64,000 bases of DNA from Hypanus sabinus (lineage: Eukaryota), in the NCBI RefSeq assembly GCF_030144855.1, contig NC_082710.1, positions 173,786,001-173,850,000 of the forward strand. The letters run 5' to 3'. A model generated the notes under the pieces. That model worked only from the letters and a program-made list of their open reading frames with translations. It had not been told where the DNA came from and made no database searches. Shown here piece by piece: positions 2,466-46,940 of the stretch. The position numbers and the translations under genes were made by a program. Position 1 is the stretch's first letter. The number at the start of each line of letters is the position of its first letter.

Positions 2466-2912
2466 TCAGTAAAATACAGACAACACAAAAATAGTCCAAG
2501 ACCATGCTCGGCGGGGGACGACGCATGTCTGCCGGGTAGCTGTAAACAGGCTTGAGGCTTAGTCCTCGCTTCAACCAAAGCCGCGCAGTTTCCTCTCCGT
2601 CCGCCAATAAATCACTGAATTAGACTTGCGGCATTCAACAACCAACAGGATCTTGCGATCACAAGAGAGCGACTGAGTCTGCATGCCTCCTTCTCGCATT
2701 GGCTCCTCCGACGCCTCACTGATAAAAGGGGCAGGTGCGAGCAGTGGATTGGTCAGAATTACAGGGAAGGGCGGGTCCTAGTGGAGTGCCGTAGCAGAGG
2801 ATTGGATAGGCTCCGAGCAGGTTTGCTCTACGACGTCCACTTTCTCCTATTATGTGCGAGGATTCCTCTGCTCGCCCACCCAGGTGGGGCGTCGTGGACC
2901 AGGAAGGTTCTG

Positions 2913-3509
2913 ATGGCCGAGGTCGTTCCCGCCAAGGCTGATATTCCCGTCGTTCTTCCTCCTGACACTTCTGCCGGTTCCGACCTCGCCGCCCCTTCGG
3001 CCACGATCGGTACTGCGGCTAAGAAGAAGGCGCTTCATCGGTCTCAAAAGGCCACAGCGGCCATGGTGGTTGAGCAGATCGCGGAGGTGGTAGCCGCCAC
3101 TAAAGAGCGACAGGCCTCTAAGCTGGGCGGTGTGAAGAAAACCATCTCGGCCGCTGGCTACGATGCGGACAAGGCCGTCGCCCGCTCCAACCTGCCAGCC
3201 GACACCTTGCCTAACAAGGGTTCCACCGTGGAAGGCACTGTCGCCGGCAGCTCCGCTTCCGCTCTTCGCCCGGATCAGGAAGCGGAGGGCGAGCGGGGAG
3301 AGTCCGAGGACCAGAGGAAAGGAGGGACAAAGAAGAAAGCAGCGACCAGAAAACCGCCTCCGAAAAGATCGGCGGCAGCCAAGTCCGCTGCCCGGAATCG
3401 TGCCAAGAGTCCCAGCAAGCGCATAACGGCCAAGGCCAAAAAAGCGCCGAAGCGTCCCGCTGCTTCCCGGGCTGCTGGGCGTGGCCGCCGGGCTGCCAAA
3501 CGGAAATAG
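2913..3509 (+). CDS. H1-derived basic protein A (198 aa) with degenerate globular domain
   Basis: Intronless ORF from ATG 2913. VAATKER..KLGGVKKTISAAGYD..NKGS aligns to the H1 winged helix; K/A/P/R-rich tail with SPSK; canonical stem-loop 22 nt after the stop. Confidence 0.85.
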   Translation: MAEVVPAKADIPVVLPPDTSAGSDLAAPSATIGTAAKKKALHRSQKATAAMVVEQIAEVVAATKERQASKLGGVKKTISAAGYDADKAVARSNLPADTLPNKGSTVEGTVAGSSASALRPDQEAEGERGESEDQRKGGTKKKAATRKPPPKRSAAAKSAARNRAKSPSKRITAKAKKAPKRPAASRAAGRGRRAAKRK

Positions 3510-3531
3510 AGGTTAAGCATCTGAAACCAAA

Positions 3532-3547
3532 GGCTCTTTTCAGAGCC
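3532..3547 (+). terminator. Histone 3' stem-loop
   Basis: GGCTCTTTTCAGAGCC preceded by CCAAA; purine-rich AAAGGGGAG about 15 nt downstream (HDE-like). Confidence 0.95.
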
Positions 3548-5319
3548 GCGCAAACATCTTCAAAGGGGAGGGCTACACAGTAACATCCAGGACTGGTACT
3601 AAGTCCACAGCTTAAGTATACAGACACCACATACTGACCCGAGATACACTTACTTACAGCCATTCTCAGTACAACCAAGAAATACAGTAAGTGGAAAAAA
3701 CAAAATACAAAAGAAAAGCAAATAATACTGAGAACATGAGTTAGTCCATAGGTTGTGAAATCAGCTCGGAGCTGAAGTGAGTGAAGGTATTTCCCCTGGT
3801 CCAGCTTCTTGAAGCTGCTGGTGTGGGACCTAAGCTCCCCGTACCTCCTGTCCAATGGTAGGAGCGAGTGGAGGGCGTGGACTGGATGGTGGTGAAGGAT
3901 TCTGCTTTTTGTGGCATTCGCGGGCACGTCTATCCAAGAATCATTAACGTCAGGAATCCAGTTTCCTGATTATTTGATGTATATATATCTATTACCTTAA
4001 GAATTAATTATTCGAGAAATACAGTTCTCCTGAGCAGAGATTTAAAAAAACACCACCCTCCCTGTTAAGTCACTTCAGGTTATAAATTAGCAATGGCAAT
4101 TTATTATTCTGAATTTTTGATATTTACACCCAGACTTCTCATCGGAAGCATCCGAGAACACCCCTAATTTCTTTTTTTTCCTATTCTAAGCTACAGAAAA
4201 TAGAGATGTTTTCTCAGCCTCTCCTGTAGTGAAACAAACTAACTGTCCCAGCGGCATTAAACAGTCCACTGGAGGAACGGGAAGAGGATTGTTGACGTTT
4301 ATGGCTAGGGTTTCATTGAAACCCACGTATTAAGCCCTGATTCAAGGTTTTAAACTGAATGTTACTGAAGTTCTGCGATTTGTGGATTGGATTGGCACTC
4401 AGTTTGACATTTTTAAAAAATATTCTGTGTTTTTGCCCGTTCTTTCTGGTTGCTATTTGCCGCAATTTGTGCGAGGATGGGGAGGGGGGTGGGGTACAGT
4501 TGAAGTGTCTCTGTGAATGACCTGCATGGTTCTTCTTTGTTTCGGGGCTATCTGGAGAAGAACAGACTCAGAGCTGTATACTGCATACTTACTTTGATAA
4601 TAAATGAACCTTTAAATCCGTTCATGGAAACGTGGAGAATTCCTTCCCCAAACACCAGCCCCTCGCTCCCTGGAGATTCTCTTCTACCAGATGATTTCCT
4701 CCAGCAGATTGTTTCTTGCTTCAGTCTTTCATGTCAACCAATGACGAAACTGTGCTGCACACCTCTTTTGGTGAAGTACGCCTCTGTTTAAAAGTGACAC
4801 AAGCTAAGCTAACTACAATAACCTGGATATCTCTCCATTGTGATTTGCTCCTTCAGATAAATTCTCTGATAATTAACATGGGCCAATGTTGGCTTCAGCG
4901 ACTTGTGTAAGAATAAATCATTGACCTTTTTAAATATCAGATTCAGAATCATTTATTTATCACATGTATATTGAAACATACAGTGAAATGTGTTGTTTGT
5001 GTTAATGACCAACACAACATAAGGATGCAGGACACCTTCATTTCGGGAAATAAGATGGTTCTTTGGTCAGCAAGAGCTGTGCTTTCGTGCACCATCAGGA
5101 AGACTAAATGTGATTATTAGCAGAGAATATACAGCATTTCAGGGATGCCAGAGACACTTGGTGCATCTAGCAGGGCACTCAAACCATTATGGATTTCACT
5201 CTTCCCATCAATGACAATGAGCTAGGCCGAGTGTCTTTTATACACAATTTGATGCATGGAATGATGTGTCCGTGAGGAAGCCCCCCCCCCCCCACAAAGT
5301 GCAGGCACTCTGCCTGGCA

Positions 5320-8920: not shown

Positions 8921-9346
<426 letters not shown>

Positions 9347-10897
9347 TTATCACGTGACACTCCTCCGCCGCTCGCCCCTACTCTCTCTTTCGCGACATAA
9401 CGTAAAATCTAATAAAGGTACTTCCACTCGTCGGAAATAAATAAATGCATGTTTCTGTATTTTCTTGCAAATTAACATTCTCAGTAAAACAGAAAACAGC
9501 ATTTTTGTTAGACAATCAGAGAAAATGTTAAAACCTTGTAATTTAATTGGAGGAAAATAAGTAATGCTAGGGAACTAGACGCATTTCTCGGCGATAGTCT
9601 TAATGCCTAAATGTAAATGTTGTTTTTAGTTTCACTAGGGCCAAATTTATCGCAGGGGGAAAAAAAGATCTTGACGATAAACCACTAATTTTGCACTATC
9701 GGTTTATTTATTTTACTATTTGTTCCCTTTTATTTACTTGCACAGTTCGTCTTTTTTGCTTATTGATTTGTGTGTAGATTTTCACTGATCCCGTTGCCTT
9801 TCTTTTATCTGCTGTGAATGACTGCAAGAAAATGAAACTTAGGGTTGTATATTGTATGTGTACTTTGATAATAAATTTACTTTTAAGTTTGAACTTAAAC
9901 TACGATTGCTCCAAGGAGCCTAATTCTTCATTAAGTTCTTTATTAGCAATTAGCAAGCATGCAAGCTTAAGCTAAGTGCAATTGAATGTTATTCAGTGAT
10001 GTTGAGTGATCTGCAAAAGATATGACATCCAGCAGCCCCAAGCAACAACTGTAAAGAGCAAAGCACGAATACGTGATTTATTCCGTTCACTTTTGCCAAG
10101 CCACTATTTCTATAATAAACACAGAATACAGTGCAGATAGAGAACAGCATGTTTACATTGTAAATACATGCTGTTATTTATATATTGATGTACATTTTAT
10201 CCATCTGCATACTTTAACCTCAAAGTCTATGTTATACAGTATAACCTTTTATTCTTTATAATTGCTGAATGTTGTTTTGTGCTGCATGTTACTCTCCGAT
10301 CAACTCACCACTGCAAACTCCTAAATGTGTATGGGGAATAAAGTTGATCCTTGATATTAATTCCCAGAACAGATTAAAGGAAGCTTCCTGCTGAGAGAGA
10401 AATTAGGCTAACATGCGATATTGAAGGTCAGAGTGACAAGGTGTAACTTGCTGTCATAGGGAGTGGTTGAGGAGAATAGATGGACAAGGGAACTGGATAA
10501 ATACATGAAGGAGGAAGGAAAAGAGGGACATGCAGCTGGGCAGAGGACGAAAGGTAGGAAGAGGTTTCTGCAGAGTGAGATTAACAGTATTAAAAATGGA
10601 GAGCATGATTAGGGTAAGGGCAAGAGGTTTAGAGGAGAACAGAAGTAAGATTATTTTCCATTCAAGGTTGGTTGGACTTTAGAACACACTGCCCGAGGAG
10701 GCAGTGGATTTAATCACCAAGGTGTAGAAGGCTACAGGCCAAGCGCTGCTAAATGGGGTTTGTTTAGAGATTAGCTTAGTGTTTCCCATCTATAGTGAAA
10801 CATTCAAACATGCAGCAAATTGCATCTTTTGTGTCAATGACCAACAGTCTGAAATGTGCTGGGAGCAGCCTGTAAGAGCCATCATGCTTCCAGTGCC

Positions 10898-15164: not shown

Positions 15165-16130
15165 TTGAAATAACTACTCAAAGGAACAGTACTTGGAAGA
15201 GGGGACTGTGTGTAGCGTAGCAAAATTTGCTGATGTCATTAAACTGAGTGGAAAAGCAAATTGTACAGAGGATGTGGAGAGTCTGTAGAGGGATATAGAT
15301 AGGTAAAGTGAGTGGACCAAGGTCTGGCAGATGGAATACAACGTTGGTAAATGTGAGATCATCCACTTTGGAAGGAATAATAGAAGAACAGATTATTATT
15401 TAAATGGTGGAAGATTGCAGCATGCTGTTGTGCAGAGGGACTTGGGAGTGCTTGTTCATGAATCACAAAAACTTGGCTTGCAGGTACAACAGGTTATTAA
15501 GAAGGCAAATGAAATGTTGGCATTCATTGGTAGAGGGATTGAATTCAAGAGCAGGGAGGTCATACTGCAACTATACAGGGTACTGGTGAGGCCACACCTG
15601 GAGTACTGTGTGCAGTTCTGTTCTCCATACTTGAGGAAGGATATACTGGCTTTAGAGGCAGTGCAGAGGAGGTTCACCAGGTTGATTCCAGAGATGAAGG
15701 GGTTAACCTATGAGGAGAGATTGAGTCGCTGGGACTATACTCTCTGGAGTTCAGAAGAATGAGAAGGGATCTTATAGAAAAATACAAAATTAGAAGGGAT
15801 AGATAAGATAGAAGTAGTGTGAGACTAGAACTGGGGGACATTGCCTCAAGATTCAGGGGAGAAGATTTAGGATGGAAATGAGGAGAAACTGTTTTTCCCA
15901 GAGTGTGGTTTTTCCCAGAGTCTGCCCAGGGAAGCAGTTGAGGCTTCTTCACTAAATATATTTAAGATTCAATTAGATAGATTTTTACATAGCAGGGGTA
16001 TTGAGGGTTATGGGGAAAAGGCAGGTAGACGGAGCTGAGTTTACGGACAGATCAACCATGATCTTATTGAATGTCGGGGCAGGCTCGATGGGCCGGATGG
16101 CCGACTCCTGCTCCTGTTTCTTATGTTCTT
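15165..16130 (+). mobile_element. CR1 LINE 3' fragment
   Basis: ORF 15331-15762 (RDLGVLVH..RPHLEYCVQF..EAVQRRFTRLIP) plus 3' UTR. Confidence 0.9.
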
Positions 16131-16497
16131 ATGCAGGACAGGAAGAGACTTAGAGAAAGATGCAGCGAAGAAACTGACCCTCATCCCACCAGATCATGGC
16201 AGTCATCAACCACACAACTACACTAACCTTCCCTTGATCTATTCCATTCTCCCTACATTCCTATCAACTCCTCAGATTCTACAACTCACCCACAAACTAG
16301 GGGCTTTAGCAGCCGCCATTTAATATACTCATCTGCATGTCTTAGGGATGTTGAGGTCACCTGATGGCTCAGTGGAAGCCCACACGGCCACAGACAGAAC
16401 TTACAAACCCTGTACAAATTTCACCAGAGGTCAGGATCAAACCCAGGGCTTTGGTGCTTTGAGTCAGCAGTGTTCAGTGTCAAACCGGAATCTCTCA

Positions 16498-16968
16498 GCA
16501 GGTTGATTCCTGGGATGGCAGGACTTTCATATGAAGAAAGACTGGATCGACTAGGCTTATACTCACTGAAATTTAGAGGATTGAGGGGGGATCTTATTGA
16601 AACGTATAAAATTCTAAAGGGATTGGACAGGCTAGATGCAGGAAGATTGTTTCCGATGTTGGGGGAGCCCAGAATGAGGGGTCACAGTTTAAGGATAAAG
16701 GGGAAGCCTTTTAGAACCGAGATGAGGAAAAACCTCTTCACACAGAGAGTGGTGAATCTGTGGAATTCTCTGCCACAGGAAACAGTTGAGGCTGGTTCAT
16801 TGGATATATTTAAGAGGAAGTTAGATATGGCCCTTGTGGCTAAAGGGATCAGGGGTATGGAGAGAAAGCAGGTACAGGGTTCTGAGTTGGATGATCAGCC
16901 ATGATCATACTGAATGGCGGTGCAGGCTCGAAGGGCCGAAGGGCCTACTCCTGCACCTATTTTCTATG
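16498..16968 (+). mobile_element. CR1 LINE 3' end
   Basis: LSYEERLDRLGLYSL..RGHSLRI..FTQRVVNLWNSLP and 3' UTR. Confidence 0.9.
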
Positions 16969-17564
16969 TTGCACTAATGTCTGGTTTATTTTACTTACAC
17001 AGGGCAGTGGGTATTAGGAATGAACTACCAGAGGAGGTTGTAAAAACAGGTAAAATTTCAATGCTTAAAAGACTTCTAGACAGGTACATGGATAGGAGAG
17101 GTTTAAAGTAGTTTGGGCCAAACACACGATGGGACTAGCTCAGCTCGGGCTGATACCCCCGCTGTGTAGTGCTATGACTCGACATAAATCCACTTATAAT
17201 AAAGAGAGTTAACGAAGATTAGACAGATCCGTTGCTTGGGTGGCAGGTTTGCTTTAACAGAGATTGAGCAGACTGATTCTTTATTCTCGGGAGCTTAGTG
17301 GTCTCATTGAAAAAGATGTAGAGCTAGACGAGGTAGAGACGGTGGGAGTGTTCCACCTGGTTGAGGTCTTCATCCAATAAAAGGGTTGAGTGGCACAGGA
17401 GTGTCGCGCCAACAGTGCCAGCTCGTTCCCACTGCGGTCGGTAACATATTTGCTCATTCTTCCCCGTGAGAACGTGGTGCCCAGCTTCCACGCACATTTT
17501 AAAGACATGTGGACCAGGGCTGCTATGTTCTGGTCATGCTGTACTGGTGCCAGACACATGGTCC

Positions 17565-19541: not shown

Positions 19542-19937
<396 letters not shown>

Positions 19938-20802: not shown

Positions 20803-21591
20803 CTATCTCCGTTTGACTGCCTGGTCCCGCCGCCTGGCTGCCCGGGAAACAGCGGGCCGCTTGGGCCCTTTTTTGGCCATGGCCGTCGTGCACCTGCGGG
20901 GGCTTTTGGCCGCCTGCTTTCGGGCGGTGGGCTCAGCTGCTACGGCTCTTTTCCGGGCGGTGGGCTTGGCTGTTGCGGCTCTTTTCCGGGCGGTGGGCTT
21001 GGCTGCTCCGGCTCTTTTCCGGGCGGTGGGCTTGGCTGTTGCGGCTCTTTTCCGGGCGGTGGGCTTGGCTGTTGCGGCTCTTTTCCGGGCGGTGGGCTCC
21101 GCTGCTACGGCTCTTTTCCGGGCGGTGGGCTTGGCTGCTCCGGCTCTTTTCCGGGCGGTGGGCTTGGCTGCTCCGGCTCTTTTCCGGGCGGTGGGCTTGG
21201 CTGCAACAGCTCTCTTCCGAACCTTTCTCCTGATCTCCTCTTTACTCTGCTTCTCGACCGCCGCCTCCTGATTCGAACGGAGAGCAGAAGCGGAGCTGCC
21301 AGCGGCAGCACCTCCCACAGCGGAACCTTTGTTGGGTAAGGTGTCGGCCGACTGCCTGGGGCGGGAGCTAGCCTCGTAGGCGGCGGCCGAGGTGGTTTTC
21401 TTCACGGCGCCGAGCTTGGTCGCCTGGCGCTCCTTGGTGGCGGTCACTGCTTCCAGGATGTGCTCGGCCATTGCGCCTTTCTGCGACCTATAACCTGCCT
21501 TCTTCTTGGCAGCCGACAACAGGCCAGTGGCGGCAGGAAAGGGACAGTTGGGAGCCGCACCATCGTCTTTAGTAGAAACGGTGTCAGCCAT
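20803..21591 (-). CDS. H1-derived basic protein B (262 aa) with degenerate globular domain and 11-aa repeats
   Basis: Intronless ORF from ATG 21591; paralog of 2913-3509 (ATKERQA.KLG.VKKT.SAA.Y, DTLPNKGS, AGSSASALR); canonical stem-loop. Confidence 0.88.
   Translation of the reverse strand: MADTVSTKDDGAAPNCPFPAATGLLSAAKKKAGYRSQKGAMAEHILEAVTATKERQATKLGAVKKTTSAAAYEASSRPRQSADTLPNKGSAVGGAAAGSSASALRSNQEAAVEKQSKEEIRRKVRKRAVAAKPTARKRAGAAKPTARKRAGAAKPTARKRAVAAEPTARKRAATAKPTARKRAATAKPTARKRAGAAKPTARKRAATAKPTARKRAVAAEPTARKQAAKSPRRCTTAMAKKGPKRPAVSRAARRRDQAVKRR
20923..21219 (-). repeat. Coding minisatellite, 9 x 33 bp
   Basis: Encodes RKRA(VA/GA/AT)A(K/E)PTA nine times. Confidence 0.95.
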
Positions 21592-21690
21592 TCCACGCAA
21601 TCGCCTCAAGACGCGGCGGATCGGCGGCGGCTCCCGTTTAAAGGCGAGAAGCGGACGAGGTAGAACTAACCAACCTCCTCTTTCTTATGT

Positions 21691-29309: not shown

Positions 29310-29385
29310 GAAAAGCACAAGATTATCAAGTTTGGGAGGGAGGACCCGGGTTCGCTCTTCCCCGTCCGCCTCCGCCTTATAAATA
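29310..29385 (+). promoter_or_regulatory. Promoter of Arg-rich H1
   Basis: TATAAATA at 29378-29385, two CCGCC GC boxes just upstream, AAAGCACA (imperfect H1 AC box) at ~29312; no proximal CCAAT. Confidence 0.65.
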
Positions 29386-29446: not shown

Positions 29447-30205
29447 ATGTCCGAGAACCAGAAGGCGGCAGATGGCAGCGATTCCGGTGAAAAGGGAGGC
29501 GGTGGAGGCGCCGGCGGCACCACTCCGCCTCAAGGTCGGACGGCGCCGGACAAGGATGGGGCGGTGAAGAAAAAGAAAAAGCAACAACAACCGTCGCAGC
29601 AACAGGTTCAGTCAAAGGCGCCTCAGCAGTCCAAGAAGCCGCAGAATGGCCCCACCATCACCGACCACGTCCTCTCTTTGGCGGCAGCCACCAAGGAGAG
29701 GCGTGGCATCTCGCTGGCAGCCCTGAAGAAAGCGCTGACGGCCAAGGGTTACGATGTGAACCGCAACAACGCTCGCGTCAACCTGACGGTACGCCAGCTA
29801 GTGCAGAAGGGCTCGCTGGTGAAGACGAGCGGCCACGGCGCCGCCGGCTCCTTCAAGCTGAACCGGCTGGCGGCTCCCAAGCAAGGAAAGAAAGAGGCAA
29901 CCCGCAAGAAGGTGGCTTGGCGCACTCCTACCCCTTCCAAGAGGACGCGGAACAGGAAGAGGAGTCCAAGGCGCCAGACTAAGCCACGGAAGACCACCGC
30001 ACGCCCCCTCAAGCGCCGGCCCAAAACGGGTGCCCGGCCCCGCGCCAGAGCCAAGGCTCGTTCCCGCCTCAAGCGTAAAGTAGGCAGGGCTCGGACGGCA
30101 CGGGTCTATCGCCGGTACAAATCGGCTAAAGGCAAGAGAGCGAATCGCGGACGGACCCGGCAGCCAGTGGGGCGCCAACGGCAACTCGGACCCCGGCGCT
30201 ACTAG
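29447..30205 (+). CDS. Histone H1 variant / protamine-like protein (252 aa) with intact winged helix and Arg-rich C-tail
   Basis: GPTITDHV..ATKERRGISLAALKKALTAKGYDV..LVQKGSLVKTSGHGAAGSFKLN is a good H1 globular domain. The last 88 aa have 29 Arg and 12 Lys. TATA and stem-loop present. Confidence 0.93.
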   Translation: MSENQKAADGSDSGEKGGGGGAGGTTPPQGRTAPDKDGAVKKKKKQQQPSQQQVQSKAPQQSKKPQNGPTITDHVLSLAAATKERRGISLAALKKALTAKGYDVNRNNARVNLTVRQLVQKGSLVKTSGHGAAGSFKLNRLAAPKQGKKEATRKKVAWRTPTPSKRTRNRKRSPRRQTKPRKTTARPLKRRPKTGARPRARAKARSRLKRKVGRARTARVYRRYKSAKGKRANRGRTRQPVGRQRQLGPRRY

Positions 30206-31916: not shown

Positions 31917-32324
31917 CTACTTGGAGCTCGAGTATTTGGTGACCGTTTTTGTTCCTTCCGAGACGGCGTGTTTAGCCAGTTCCCCGGGCAGCAGGAAGCG
32001 GACGGCGCTCTGGATCTCCCGGGAGGAGATGGTCTGGCGGCGGGTGTAATGCACCAGGCGGGAAGCCTCGGACGCGATGCGCTCGAAGATGTCGCTGACG
32101 AACGAGTTGAGGATACTTATCGCCTTGGACGAAATGCTCGTGTCCGGGTGGACCTGCTTCAGCACTTTATAGATATAGATGCTGTAGCTCTCCTTCCTGC
32201 TCTTCTTGTGTTTCCTGGTTTTCCTGTTCACCTTCTTGGCGTTTTTCTTGGAGCCCTTCTTTGACACGGTGCTCGTGGAACTCTCAGCCGTGCCATTTGT
32301 GGAAACAGCATCAGCGGTCAGCAT
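31917..32324 (-). CDS. H2B: Divergent histone H2B variant (135 aa)
   Basis: Complete histone fold ([33 protein letters not shown]), novel N-tail, octamer promoter, stem-loop. Confidence 0.96.
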
Positions 32325-32503: not shown

Positions 32504-34104
32504 TAATCCGTGCTCGGATGCACAAATAGCAGCGGGACTTGTGTTTCTATTTGTAACCGTAACGAGAACAGCGAGAACTTTAAAATGTCGAAGAACGCCG
32601 TTATTTAATAACCAAACTAGATTTTAAACCTCGCCTCTAGAAACAATCATGCTCAAGTAAATTAATTTGTGTTGCAAAACATAAAGAAATTTGACTCATC
32701 TTCAAAGGCTAAGAAGAAAATCGAAACCTGAGGTCTTGTGCAACAACAGCAAAATGCGTTTAATGTAGGAATATTCGAGGTGTGCATATAATACAGCATC
32801 GCAGCACATGTGAAAGTTTTCCATATTTATTGGCGATTTGTTTCAACCAGTCTCCACATTTACAGTGACATTTTGAGCCTATGGCGACTCCTAAGGTGTT
32901 AGTGCAGGACCCAATCTAATCTCGTTTATTACCTGTCAGTTTGTACTCCTCCTCTCCTACCCCCCTTCTTATTTTTGTGGCTTCTGTCCCCTTCCTTTCC
33001 AGTCCTGATATGGAATCATCTTGAAGACTGACTGTTTATTCTTCTCCATAGATGCTGTCGGATCTGATGAGTTCCTCCAGCATTTTGAGTACCTTAGTGG
33101 AGGTTTCCAGCATCTGCAGAAACTATTATTTCAGTATGTCTATGTTAGAGGCATTCTAACTATTCTGAATATACTAAGGGTCCTGAATATTTTTACTGAA
33201 TTGTTCAGAGGTAACAGTGATGCTGCTGAAAGTAAGTTTTTCACTGCACCTGTGCATATGAAAATAGACCTGAGTTTGACCTTAACTCGGCCAAGGCTCT
33301 TGGAGAGTCCAAAGCACCACATCATCTGGTACACATTTCTGCTAGACACACCCTGAAAAATTAGCTTTCCTTTTCCATTCACTCTGCCCAAGCTTGTCAT
33401 TATTTCCTCTCTGCCTCTTATCACTTCCTTAGTAACAGCATTTCCCTCCCATTGATCACAGGGTAACTGGTCCATGTTTCCTCAGGTTATCGTAGCCGGG
33501 GGTGGAAGTAGGGATAAGCTCCCACTACCTATAAACTGCTCCAAATGGCTTGTGACTCTAACAGCCTCTGACAACCAAGTCCAACTCTTGACCTTCATGT
33601 GTGGCTTAGCTACTAGGCCCAGTGGAACTGTTTCTACTGATGAGAGAAGGGGCAAAGGCGGACCACTGGTGCCTCAAAACCAAACGCTTCAAGCAGGCGG
33701 GACTCATCAGCCTTGGATGGCAGCCCACCTGGGAGAAGGAAAACTGTTATTTTAAACCCCCGCTGCCTTGTGGCCAAAGCCACCCATGGGAGAGGCTTCG
33801 GGAGTAAACCCTGAGGAAGGAATCCACAACTGGGTCCCTAAGCCAGTTTGATGTTGTTTAAAACTTCACTCTGGCAACCTCTACGACCACACTGGTGCCA
33901 AACTGTATCGGTGTTTGCCACATCAGTGACTTAGAGAGGGGGAGCCCACTGCATGGGCACAGCCGGTTCTTCAAATCTTCCCACCCAGGCTTGCACCCTG
34001 GAAAGGACACGGTCCACCAGAGGCACAAACCCATGATCCTCTGTGATCGGCGGCTGCCTGCTAATAGAACTCACTTTATAACCATTTAACAATCACAGCA
34101 TGGA

Positions 34105-35575
34105 AACTCCTAGTCCGTGGCAAACTCTTAATCTCACCTGGTCCCACCTACCCGCATTCAGCCCATAACCCTCCACTCCTTTCCTGTCCATATACCTATC
34201 CAATTTTACCTTAAATGACACAACTGAACTGGCCTCTACTACTTCTACAGGAAGCTCATTCCACACAGCTATCACTCTCTGAGTAAAGAAATACCCCCTC
34301 GTGTTTCCCTTAAACTTCTGCCCCCTAACTCTCAAATCATGTCCTCTCGTTTGAATCTCCCCTACTCTCAATGGAAACAGCCTATTCACGTCAACTCTAT
34401 CTATCCCTCTCAAAATTTTAAATACCTCGATCAAATCCCCCCTCAACCTTCTACGCTCCAATGAATAGAGACCTAACTTGTTCAACCTTTCTCTGTAACT
34501 TAAGTGCTGAAACCCAGGTAACATCCTAGTAAATCGTCTCTGCACTCTCTCTAATTTATTGATATTTTTCCTATAATTTGGTGACCAGAATTGTACATGA
34601 TATTCCACTGCCTTACCCTCGTCAACATTCCTCGTAACTTCTTCAAAAAATTCAATAAGGTTTGTCAAACATGACCTTCCACGCACAAATCCATGCTGGC
34701 TACTCCTAATCAGATCCTGTCTATCCAGATAATTATTAATACTATCTCTAAGAATACTTTCCATTAATTTACCCACCACTGATGTCAAACTGACAGGTCT
34801 ATAATTGCTAGGCTTACTTCTATAAACCTTTTTAAACAATGGAACCACATGAGCAATACGCCAATCCTCCGGCACAATCCCCGTTTCTAATGACATCTTA
34901 AAGATCTCCGTCAGAGCTCCTGCTATCTCTACACAAACTTCCCTCAGGACCTGGAGATTTATCCACTTTTAAATTTCTTAAAAGCGCCAGTACTTCCACC
35001 TCTTTAATTGTCATAGGTTCCATAACTTCCTTACTTGTTTCCCACACCTTACACAATTCAATATCCTTCTCCTTAGTGAATACCGAAGAGAAGAAATCAT
35101 TCAAAATCTCTCCCATCTCCCTCGGCTCCACACATAGCTGTCCACACTGATTCTCTAAGGGGCCAATTTTATCCCTCACTATCCTCTTGCTTTTAATATA
35201 ACTGTAGAAACCTTTCGGATTTACTTTCACCTTATTTGCCAAACCAACCTCATATCTTCTTTTAGCTTTTCTAATCTCTTTCTTAAGATTCCTTTTACAT
35301 TCTTTATATTCCTCGAGCAATTCCTTTACTCCATGCTGCCTATATCTATTGTAGACATCCCTCTTTTTCCGAACCAAATTTCTAATATCCCTTGAAAACC
35401 ATGGTGCTTTCAAATCTTTAACCTTTCCTTTCAACCTAACAGGAACATAAAGATTCTGTACCCTCATAATTTCACCCTTAAATGACCTCCATTTCTCTAT
35501 TACATCCTTCCCATAAAACAACTTGACCCAATCCACTCTCTCTAAATCCCTTCGCATCTCCTCAAAGTTAGCCTT
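34105..35575 (-). mobile_element. CR1 LINE with two internal deletions and still-open ORF2 segments
   Basis: ORFs 34898-35659 and 34093-34896 are CR1 ORF2 (VDKSPGP, NYRPVSLTSVVGK, QHGFVRGRSCLTNL) joined directly to the C-terminal EYHVQFW; RT core missing. Confidence 0.92.
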
Positions 35576-35699
35576 TCTTTTCTCCTTTTTCTTAAACAGA
35601 GTTATACAATGCAGAAATGGATCCCTCTCCTGAGCCTCTTCACATAGTTCAAAGTACATTTATTATCAGAGAATGTATACCCTATACAACCTTGAAATT

Positions 35700-39069: not shown

Positions 39070-39402
<333 letters not shown>

Positions 39403-43649: not shown

Positions 43650-46600
43650 TTAGGAACACAGAAAACCTACAGCACAATACAGGCCCTTCGGCCCACAAAG
43701 CTGTGCCGAACATGTCCCTACCTTAGAAATTACCTAGGGTTACTCATAGCCCTCTATTTTTCTGAGCTCCATGTACCTGTCCAGGAATCTCTTAAACAAC
43801 CCTACCGGATCCACGTCCACCACCGTCGCCGGCAGCCCATTCCACGCTCTCACCTCTGAGTAAAAATAACCTATCCGTGACATCTCCTCTGTACCTACTT
43901 CCAAGCACCTTAAAACTGTGCACTCTTGTGCTAGCCATTTCAGCCCAGGGAAAAAGCCTCTGACTGTCCACAACGATCAATACCTCTCATCACCTATTCA
44001 CCTCTATCAGGTCTCCTCTCATCCTCTTTCGCTCCAAGGAGAAAAGGCCGAGTACACTCAACCTATTCTCATAAGGTATGTCCCCAATCCAGGCAACATC
44101 CTTGTAAATCTCCTCTGCCCCCTTTCTATGGTTTCCACTTCCTTCCTGCAGTGAGGCAAACAGAACAGAGCACAGTACTCCAAATGGTGCAACATTACCT
44201 CTCAGCTCCTAAATCAAACCCTTGGATCATGAAGGCCAATGCACTGTATGCCATCTTAACCACAGAGCCAAACTGTGCAGCAGCTTTGAGTGTCCTATGG
44301 ACTTGGACCCCCTCTGATTCTCCACACACCCAAGATTCTTACCATTAATACTATGTTCTGCCATCATATTTGACCTACCAAAATGGACCACTTCACACTT
44401 ATCTGGGTTGAACTCCATCTGCCACTTCTCAGCCCAGTTTTGCATCCTGTCAATGTCCCATTGTAACCTCTGACAGCCCTCCACACTATCCACAACACCT
44501 CCAACCTCTGTGTCATCAGCAAATTTACTAACCCATCCCTCCACTTCCTCATCCAGGTCATTTACAAAAATCATGAAGGGTTAGGGGTCCCAGAACAGAT
44601 CCCTGAGGCACACCACTGGTCACCGACCTCCATGCAGAACATGACCCGTCTACAACCACTCTTTGCCTTCTGTGGGCAAGCCAGTTCTGGATCCACAAAG
44701 CAATGTCCCCTTGGATCCCATGCCTCCTTACTTTCTCAATAAGTCCTGCAAGGGGTATCTTGTCAAATGCCTTGCTGAAATCCATATACACTACATCTAT
44801 GGCTCTACCTTCATCAATGTGTACAGTCACATACTCAAAAAATTCAATCAGGCCCAGAAGGCACAACCTGCCTTTGACAAAGCCATGCTGACTATTCCTA
44901 ATTATGTTATGCCTCTCCAAATGTTCATAATCCTGCCTCTCAGGATCTTCTCCATCAACTTAACTGCCACTGAGGTAAGACTCACTAGACTAGTCTATAA
45001 TTTCCTGGGCTATCTCTACTCCCTTTCTTGAATAAGGGAACAACATCCGCAACCCTCCAAACCTCTGGAGCCTCTCCAGCCCTCATTGATGATGCTAGGA
45101 TCACCGCCAGAGGCTCAGCAATCTCCTCCCTCACCTCCCATGATAGCCTGAGGTACATCTCGTTCAGTCCTGAGACTTATCCAACTTGATGCTTTCCAAA
45201 AGCTCCAGCACATCCTCTTTCACAATATCTACATGCTCAAGCTTTTCAGTCTGTTGCAAGTCATCACTACAATCACCAAGATCCTTTTCCATAGTGAATA
45301 CAACATTCATTAAGTAGCTCTGCTATCACCTCCATTTCCATACACACTTTTCCACTGTCATGCTTGATTGGTCCTATCCTCTCTTATCTTATCCTCTTGC
45401 TCTTCACATACTTGGGGTTCTGTTTCCAATCTGTTTTCTATCTGTTTCCAGTTTATGCTTCCAATTTCCTGCCTGATAGCCTCATATTTCCACTTATTCC
45501 AATTAAACACTTTCCTAACTTGTCTGTTCCTAACCCTCTTCAATGCTCTGTTAAAGGAGATAGAATTGTGATCACTATCTCCAAAATGCTCTCCCACTGA
45601 GAGATCTGACACCTGACCAGGTTCATTTCCCAATACCAGATCAAGTACAGTCACTCCTCTTGTAGGCATATCTACATACTGTGTCAAGAAACCTTCCTGA
45701 ACACACCTAACAAACTCCACCCCATCTAAACCCCTCACTCTAGGGAGATACCAATCGATATTTGGAAAATTAAAACTCCCACCACAACAACCCTGTTATA
45801 TTACACCTTTCCAAAATCTGTCTTCCTATTTGCTCCTCGATGTCCCTGTTACTATTGGGTGGTCTATAATAAAACACCCAGTAGAGTTATTGATCCCTTC
45901 CTGTTCTTAATTTACACCCACAGAGACTCGGTAGACAATCGCTCCACAACTTCCTCCTTTTTTGCAGCTGTGACACTATCTCTGATGAACAAGGCCACAC
46001 CCCCATCTCTTTTGCCTCCCCCCCCCCATCCCTTCTGAAACATCTAAAGCCTGGCACTTTAAGTAACCATTCCAGCCCCTGAGCCATCCAAGTCTCTGTA
46101 ATGGCCACAACATCATAGCTTCAAGTACTGATCCACACTCATCCACTTTGTTCATCATACTCCTTGTATTGGAATATATATATCTCAAACCATTGGTCTG
46201 AGTGCATCCCTTCTCTATCACCTACCTATCCTCCCTCTCACACTGTCTCCGAGCTTTCTCTGTTTGTGAACCAACCTCCTCTTCCTCCATCCCTTCAGTT
46301 CAGTTCCCACCCCGCAGCAATTCTGGTTTGAATTCTCCCCAATCCTCCCCGCCAAGGTATTGGTCCCCTGGGATTTAAGTGCAATCTGTCCTTTTTGTAC
46401 AGGTCACACCTGCCCCAAAAGAGGTCCCAATGATCCAGAAACCTAAATCCCTGTCCCCTGCTCCAATCCCTCAGCCTCGCATTTATCCTCCACCTCATTC
46501 TATTCCTATACTCACTGTATCTCGAGATTACTACCTTTGAAGTCCTGCTTCTCAGCTTCCTTCCTAACTCCCCGTAGTCTGTTTTCAGGATCTCGTTCCT

Positions 46601-46940
46601 TTTCCTGCCTATGTCATTGGTACCAATATGTGCCACAACCTCTGGCTGTTCTCCTTCCCACTTCAGAATATCTTGGACCTGATCAGAAACATCCTGGACT
46701 CTGGCACTTGGGAGGTGTTTGTTTCCTGTATCCACAGAATTGCCTGTCTGACCCCCTGACTATAGAGTCCCCTTTCACTGCTGCCTTCTTCCTCCTTTCC
46801 CTACCCTTCTGAGCCACAGGAGCAAACTCTGTGCCAGAGGCATGACCACTGTTGCTTCCCCCAGGTAGACCATCTTCCCCACAACAGTACTCAAGTAGGT
46901 GTACTTATTGTTAAGTGGGACAGCCACAGGGTTACTCTCA
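43650..46940 (-). mobile_element. Near full-length decayed CR1 LINE
   Basis: ORF1 esterase-like (HIGTNDIGRK, FLDHWDLFW; 46295-46735), APE (AITETW, LDLVL, GDSDHN), RT (DFSKAFDK, SGVPQGSVLGP, KFADD) and 3' end in the correct order. Confidence 0.93.

Follow-up and report, generated by a model that had tools for sequence, protein, structure and literature searches.

The winged helix is the defining feature of linker histones, and vertebrate H1 variants, including the odd germline ones, are to our knowledge thought to keep it. The mammalian proteins H1T2 (H1-7) and HILS1 (H1-9) and the Drosophila protein Mst77F are germline relatives of H1 that take part in the histone-to-protamine transition. In dogfish, the spermatid-specific proteins S1/S2, the protamines Z1-Z3 and S4 are basic nuclear proteins of a staged replacement of histones. 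These spermatid proteins and protamines are reportedly the subject of work by Chauviere, Gusse and Chevaillier. H1-derived protamine-like (PL) sperm proteins and their precursors have been described in invertebrates (bivalve PL-I/II/IV; precursors of spider and tunicate), and some of the precursors have truncated winged helices (PMC11607694); for protein transitions, the same paper refers to the work of Gusse and Chevaillier (1978/1981).

The stretch analyzed here, called the window, comprises 64,000 nucleotides of the stingray Hypanus sabinus and is part of a cartilaginous-fish histone cluster with interspersed retrotransposon fragments. An earlier sequence-only reading had proposed that one gene of this window, gene A, encodes an H1-derived protein in which the winged helix is apparently broken while the gene is intact. 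Its 198-codon frame is indeed open, running from an ATG at 2913 to a TAG stop at 3507-3509 with no intron, and the predicted product has 198 aa (Table 1). The peptides quoted in that reading were all located in the translation: ARSNLPADTLPNKG, for the recognition helix, occupies residues 90-103, with prolines at 95 and 100; STVEGTVAGSSASALR, for the wing, residues 104-119; and DQEAEGERGESED, for the acidic patch, residues 121-133. Lys and Arg make up 43 of the 198 residues (22%; 26 K, 17 R) and 41% of the tail, which has a charge of +26 over 63 residues, no acidic residue and one SPxK motif. The C-terminal end of the tail, PKRPAASR..GR.RRA.KR(K/R), is conserved across the family to which gene A belongs. 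The acidic patch has retained its acidic composition in most family members, with an exact sequence that evolves nearly neutrally. The part of gene A under the strongest constraint is the segment of residues 35-83, in which T63, K64, R66 and Q67 are invariant in the family.

Table 1. Features of the window, with codon-model omega for the gene A family and, for scale, for C-type H1
Feature	Position	Strand	Family omega	C-type H1 omega	Remarks
Family-specific core promoter element CTCTACGACGTCCAC (promoter block site)	2826..2840	+			directly 5' of TATA-like box; putative function
TATA-like box TATTATGT	2847..2854	+			putative; ~60 nt before ATG; aligns with ortholog TTATATA / TATAAA
Gene A CDS	2913..3509	+	0.46 (2dlnL 73.5, p=1e-17 vs omega=1)	0.37	198 codons plus stop; intron-less
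Residues 1-34, N-terminal arm	2913..3014	+	0.52		Pro/Ala-rich, slightly acidic (MAExVPAKAD...); motif kept family-wide
Residues 35-83, KKK block and H1 helices 1-2 remnant	3015..3161	+	0.30 (p=8e-9)	0.22	VEQIAEVVAATKERQASKLGGVKKTISAAGY
Residues 84-120, ex-helix 3 and beta-wing	3162..3272	+	0.455 (p=0.0012)	0.27	now Pro/Ser/Gly-rich; net charge 0
Residues 121-135, acidic patch	3273..3317	+	0.79 (not significant)	not applicable	7 D/E; net -5
Residues 136-198, basic tail	3318..3506	+	0.42 (p=2e-8)	0.42	26 K/R of 63
Histone 3' processing signal	3527..3571	+			CCAAA flank, stem-loop 3532-3547, candidate purine-rich downstream element AAAGGGGAGGGCT
H4 gene	8921-9232	-
H2A gene	19542-19937	-
Paralog B	20803..21591	-			262 aa; same broken domain; own stem-loop 20760-20775
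Promoter block site	21651-21665	-
Promoter block site	29355-29369	+
Gene C	29447..30205	+			Arg-rich H1 with intact winged helix; positive control
Divergent H2B gene	31917-32324	-
H4 gene	39070-39402	+
Promoter block sites in relatives	L001-L003 ~9907-9923; L004, L005 upstream of 10001

A profile built from the gene A family matched human H1.4 chains (E 1.3e-11) and, over profile positions 43-107, the isolated globular domain GH1 (1ghc; E 4e-11). Alignment of the family to seven intact H1s with hhalign gave a probability of 98.9% and an E of 2e-17 and extended from the N-terminus through the wing. Helices 1-2, which had been described as still alignable to H1, are so at the sequence level, and the alignment in fact spans the whole domain. 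These matches indicate that gene A is an H1 descendant across its whole globular domain. In keeping with common descent, gene A has the layout of H1/H5 (PF00538), of the variant H1s of the cluster and of the Callorhinchus 'H1.3-like' protein V9L8L1, with an N-arm, a central domain and a basic tail, and it has in common with H1/H5 the helix-1 motif ATKER, the LKK..GY within helix 2, the intron-less gene, the 3' stem-loop and the position in a histone cluster. In contrast to H1/H5, helix 3 and the wing of gene A lack the hydrophobic core and most of the basic contacts and have gained prolines, the protein has neither a Pfam match nor a predicted fold, and an acidic patch has been inserted before the tail.

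Scoring against the Pfam linker-histone HMM had been suggested as a check on the broken domain. A Pfam scan of gene A and paralog B returned no family, even at E<=10, and none of the 18 family members reached the PF00538 Linker_histone gathering score of 22.4 bits, with three weak matches, the best at E 0.017. The intact relatives, namely gene C (57.8 bits), two Callorhinchus H1s and the variants P0017, P0023 and P0028, scored 27-68 bits against the same model. In every family member, prolines sit inside the former helix 3; the segment of helix 3 plus wing contains 2-6 prolines, versus 0 in intact H1s, and 2-8 bulky hydrophobic residues, versus 10-11. The hydrophobic pattern is retained in the helix-1/2 segment. 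Charged residues in the helix 3/wing segment number 4 K/R and 4 D/E in gene A, compared to 6-7 K/R in intact H1. The loss of basic residues that had been noted is confirmed by the net charge of the globular-equivalent segment, which is about +2 in gene A versus about +8/+9 in intact H1, with R91, K102-G103-S104 and the helix-2 pair K75-K76 retained.

We then compared structure predictions for gene A and gene C. AlphaFold2 run on gene A with a 13-sequence family alignment gave a mean pLDDT of 50.9, values of <50 over most of residues 84-120, and one low-confidence helix at residues 45-63. With so shallow an alignment, the prediction could miss a domain that folds only when bound or that has a compact fold of a new kind. 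With 7 sequences, the control gene C yielded a full winged helix with pLDDT of 83-93 (helices 75-85, 94-103 and 112-125; strands 128-130 and 139-142). Since gene C folds with fewer sequences, alignment depth alone does not account for the negative prediction for gene A. The winged helix thus appears to be broken as proposed, being unrecognizable to Pfam and predicted without a fold by AlphaFold2 while the intact H1 control folds. The structural half of the earlier interpretation is thus supported; its functional half, a DNA-condensing or transition-type protein, is a candidate role. The crude charge-hydropathy (Uversky) test does not place the ex-globular segment of gene A on the disordered side. 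Real H1 domains also land on the folded side of this plot, which is for that reason non-discriminating. Gene A is an H1 by descent, yet it fails the HMM match, the predicted fold and the DNA-contact residues of the family.

Selection on the gene was estimated with a Goldman-Yang codon model fitted to seven genes (A, B and those of Pristis, Leucoraja, Heptranchias [two copies] and Chiloscyllium), with C-type H1 for scale; gene conversion within histone clusters and shark-ray saturation may affect the resulting omega values (Table 1). The pairwise Nei-Gojobori omega was 0.33-0.46 for all pairs, with bootstrap upper bounds of at most 0.65 (five pairs). The comparison of dN/dS against orthologs, which had been put forward as a check, gave purifying selection over the whole gene and upholds the claim of an intact gene. 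The broken region, too, is under constraint as it now stands, if a little less tightly than a real winged helix.

The alternative that keeps most of its force is that gene A is still a working linker histone, whose central region folds on nucleosomal DNA or whose winged helix was missed by AlphaFold2. It would be consistent with the homology through the whole domain, with the kept residues R91, K102-G103-S104 and K75-K76, with the constraint on the broken region and with a hydropathy on the folded side. We nevertheless consider it unlikely, given the prolines in the former helix 3 of every member, the depleted bulky residues, the fall in net charge of the segment, the missing Pfam match and the failure of AlphaFold2 on gene A where the control succeeded with fewer sequences.

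We searched for family members by word-indexed and exhaustive profile searches. The nearest public proteins to gene A were those of the ray Mobula hypostoma, with 86% identity. Batoid members were found in Mobula (three paralogs), Pristis, Leucoraja and Rhinoraja, galeomorph shark members in Heterodontus, Chiloscyllium, Carcharodon and two Scyliorhinus species, and squalomorph shark members in Heptranchias (two copies) and Pristiophorus (three copies). In the public records, the genes are named 'histone H1-like', 'H1.4-like', 'H1.10-like' or 'uncharacterized', and our search of the literature on elasmobranch/dogfish spermatid proteins and linker histones found no paper on the family. The nine strongest members scored at least 158 bits against the family profile, followed by scores of about 100 bits or less; the divergent members P0015, P0016 and P0018 had 75-102 bits, and ordinary H1s ranked beneath them. 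The best matches in a chimaera (Callorhinchus) have intact domains, with 66-68 bits versus PF00538; one of the Callorhinchus proteins, V9L8L1, has the N-terminal motif in common with the family, and its wing is followed by an acidic stretch.

We built a maximum-likelihood tree from 39 sequences, in which all 18 proteins with a broken domain grouped in one clade with a support of 100/100; the support was still 98/99 when the broken columns were removed. The clade comprises two subclades, each with sharks and rays, the second supported at 77/90 only; the tree is built from short, compositionally biased sequences and leaves the sister of the clade among the intact variant H1s unplaced. As there is one clade and both subclades contain sharks and rays, the winged helix was most likely broken once, before the shark-ray split. 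The date usually given for this split is about 270-300 million years ago. A whole vertebrate class would thus keep an H1-derived family in which half of the domain was lost once and the broken form was conserved, a natural experiment on H1 function without dyad recognition.

The 3' end of gene A was examined next to those of its relatives. The stem-loop GGCTCTTTTCAGAGCC had been called perfect, and it shows 0 mismatches; it starts 22 bases past the stop codon. Six such sites occur in the window, compared to 0.06 expected by chance. With its flanks, the gene A element scored 23.7 bits against Rfam Histone3, whose gathering score is 34, because its 3' flank is GCGCA and not ACCCA. A stem-loop follows shortly after the stop codon in all seven family genes with DNA read: five are exact 16-mers, that of Leucoraja is a one-base loop variant and that of Chiloscyllium has a stem mismatch. 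A recognizable purine-rich element ending in GCT comes after most of these stem-loops. In Chiloscyllium punctatum (L004, subclade 2), the stem-loop lies ~25 nt past the stop at 10690 and reads GGCTCTTCTCAGAACC, in which the stem contains one C·A mismatch and the loop is changed; it is followed by a good purine-rich downstream element, AAAAGAAGCT. Gene A has the layout of a replication-dependent-type histone gene, that is, intron-less, within a cluster and with a 3' stem-loop plus candidate purine-rich element.

Upstream of the family genes, the TATA box is preceded, at a distance of 8-10 nt, by a promoter block, CTCTAC..CGTCC(G/A)C. Taken over all sites, it reads CTCT(A/T)C..CGTCC(G/A)C, and both sharks and rays have conserved it. 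The form CTCTAC..CGTCC.C is exact in gene A, Pristis and both Heptranchias genes and occurs once per locus at zero mismatches. Paralog B has one mismatch (TTCTAC), the block is present in Chiloscyllium, Leucoraja carries the variant form CTCTCCCCTGTCCGC, and a shorter version, CGTCCGCC with a TATA box, is found in the C-type genes both in the window and in Heptranchias. At the window's variant genes for core histones, a search that allowed two mismatches did not find the block. We know of no named element that it matches. We rejected a reading as a CRE, since ACGTC occurs only in gene A and Pristis and the invariant core is CGTCC. A promoter-like match at 17324-17338 (-) was taken as a chance occurrence, having no gene downstream.

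The neighborhood of the family genes also shows conservation. An opposite-strand variant H4 gene lies 4-5 kb downstream of a family gene in the window, in Mobula and in Leucoraja. The H4 gene beside gene A, at 8921-9232 (-), encodes EEV for EET and RDS for RDA, and the one beside the Leucoraja ortholog (L005:14632-14943, -) carries the identical two changes, EEV and RDS. As these changes are common to the window and Leucoraja, they mark a conserved variant H4 in conserved synteny and not a private mutation. Divergent H2Bs with unusual N-terminal tails are located beside family genes in the window, at 31917-32324 (-), in Chiloscyllium (L004:11871-12257) and in Leucoraja (L005:3519-3935), which suggests that these H2Bs form, together with the family genes, a conserved specialized histone set.

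With moderate confidence, we favor the interpretation that gene A belongs to a functional elasmobranch-wide family that arose from a variant H1 by a single loss and binds chromatin through its tail, most likely in a germ-cell setting. In the shark-ray common ancestor, helix 3 and the beta-wing would have lost their hydrophobic core, most of the DNA-contact Lys/Arg and a helix-compatible sequence. This loss would have occurred once and been retained since, leaving a conserved helix-1/2 remnant followed by an ex-wing rich in Ser, Pro and Gly and then by the acidic patch and the +26 tail. The protein would no longer use a globular domain to dock on the nucleosome dyad: lacking helix 3, the wing and their charges, it is not expected to show GH1/GH5-like dyad docking, so that DNA binding would have to rest on the tail, as it does for the disordered C-terminal domains of H1 and for protamine-like proteins. 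Binding to DNA or chromatin would probably occur mainly via this disordered basic tail, and the acidic patch might temper or chaperone the tail charge. In H1, the helix-1 segment faces the protein core and not DNA; its conserved counterpart in gene A is a candidate partner-binding or self-association motif.

The setting would be germ-cell, probably spermatogenic, chromatin remodeling, together with the Arg-rich H1 and the divergent H2B/H4 of the cluster. A germ-cell role is suggested by the company of the gene, which includes variant H4s, a divergent H2B and an Arg-rich H1 whose promoter core is related, and is as such a guess from neighboring genes. Gene A may instead have a role in the oocyte or the early embryo. 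Genes with a histone stem-loop are typically expressed in S phase or meiosis rather than after meiosis, which counts against this interpretation. The findings as a whole point to a conserved variant-histone cluster in cartilaginous fishes, with an Arg-rich H1, a divergent H2B and a variant H4, that probably serves germ-cell chromatin.

Among the described systems, gene A would seem to work most like an H1-derived protamine-like or transition protein. Like the protamine-like proteins, gene A combines descent from H1 with a winged helix that is reduced or lost, and both have a basic disordered tail, with DNA binding presumed for gene A. In contrast, the PL proteins are invertebrate, usually Arg-richer and shown in sperm, whereas gene A is a vertebrate gene, has more Lys than Arg and is known from sequence alone; it has lost helix 3 as well as the hairpin and, with 22% Lys+Arg, is Lys-rich and less basic than typical protamine-like proteins. 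In ESM Atlas features, the chordate clusters nearest to gene A are auto-named 'protamine-like protein' (score 0.93), which we treat as a lead only. The gene A family may represent, in vertebrates, a stage on the way from histones to protamine-like proteins and would in that case be a vertebrate counterpart to the invertebrate H1-derived PL proteins. Strongly divergent globular domains are common to the family and to H1T2, HILS1 and Mst77F. The genes of the latter are polyadenylated, solitary and located outside histone clusters, whereas the elasmobranch family keeps the stem-loop; we found no sequence relationship with them beyond H1 ancestry.

We propose, tentatively, a more far-reaching version, in which elasmobranchs have kept, from a time before the shark-ray split, a true H1-to-protamine intermediate: a stem-loop histone gene whose product has lost dyad recognition and acts in spermiogenesis as a disordered, tail-driven chromatin condenser or as its cleavable precursor, with its helix-1 remnant repurposed for self-association or for binding a partner. 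If true, it would be the first such case in a vertebrate, and the hypothesis of an H1 origin of sperm basic proteins could be tested in a vertebrate.

A pro-protein, in which the H1 remnant and the acidic patch form a leader that neutralizes and escorts the basic tail and the tail is cleaved off in spermiogenesis as a small protamine-like peptide, is rather improbable. The acidic patch does directly precede the +26 tail, the tail ends in a highly conserved sequence, and cleavage-processed H1-derived protamine-like precursors without the C-terminal hairpin have been described (PMC11607694). On the other hand, the strongest constraint falls on the helix-1/2 block (omega 0.30), which is unusual for a disposable leader. 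Moreover, no protein of 44-140 aa matched the last 80 residues of the dogfish ortholog (Scyliorhinus canicula, P0009:125-204) at E<=0.01 in a 5.8-billion-sequence collection, in which the presence of S1/S2 and the dogfish protamines is unconfirmed. Within this scope, the search gave no sign that the family encodes the sequenced dogfish spermatid proteins, a result that also tells against the germ-cell setting. S1/S2 and the protamines of dogfish come from the same animals that host the gene A family. Their sizes, which we take to be about 80-87 aa, do not fit the family tail of 52-63 aa.

It is quite unlikely that gene A is a regulator, that is, an H1 decoy or chaperone-like factor that would use its acidic patch and conserved helix-1/2 motif to engage either the partners of H1 or the H1 tails. 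Such a function would agree with the strongest constraint lying on a segment without DNA contact in H1 and with the presence of the acidic patch, but the basic tail is clearly under purifying selection and dominates the charge, the sequence of the patch is nearly unconstrained, and nothing in the analysis points to a partner.

That gene A is a decaying H1 pseudogene with a frame open by chance is scarcely credible and, for the family as a whole, refuted: the domain looks broken and the family copies P0025 and P0010 appear decayed, but the codon likelihood-ratio tests rejected neutrality, the promoter element and 3' stem-loop are conserved, and the ortholog check for disabling mutations found open frames in at least 12 elasmobranch species, from both shark superorders and batoids, with decay apparent in some copies.

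P0025 (119 aa), in which the family core is degraded but still recognizable (…AAIKECQAPKLGPAMKTLSVTGYGIDKAGARPNQSVSVIANK…) and the C-terminus is non-basic, has probably decayed. In paralog B, about eleven tandem 9-residue units (AKPTARKRA and variants) lengthen the tail; the Mobula ortholog of B (P0010) carries the same repeat array, lacks helix 1 and the C-terminal end, and may be decaying or mis-modelled. Decayed-looking copies such as P0025 and the Mobula ortholog of B would fit a birth-and-death turnover within a maintained family.

Reverse-transcriptase/LINE-like ORF fragments are located between the histone genes of the window, at 15331-16904 (+), 34093-35659 (-) and 44227-46735 (-). In Pristis pectinata, an H1 variant (L001:454-1008) has its beta-wing replaced by a polyQ/Arg-rich stretch; it matches PF00538 with 31 bits over profile positions 2-62 only and is orthologous to Heptranchias L003:6974-7459. 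The winged helix has thus been eroded a second time within this cluster, independently of the gene A family.
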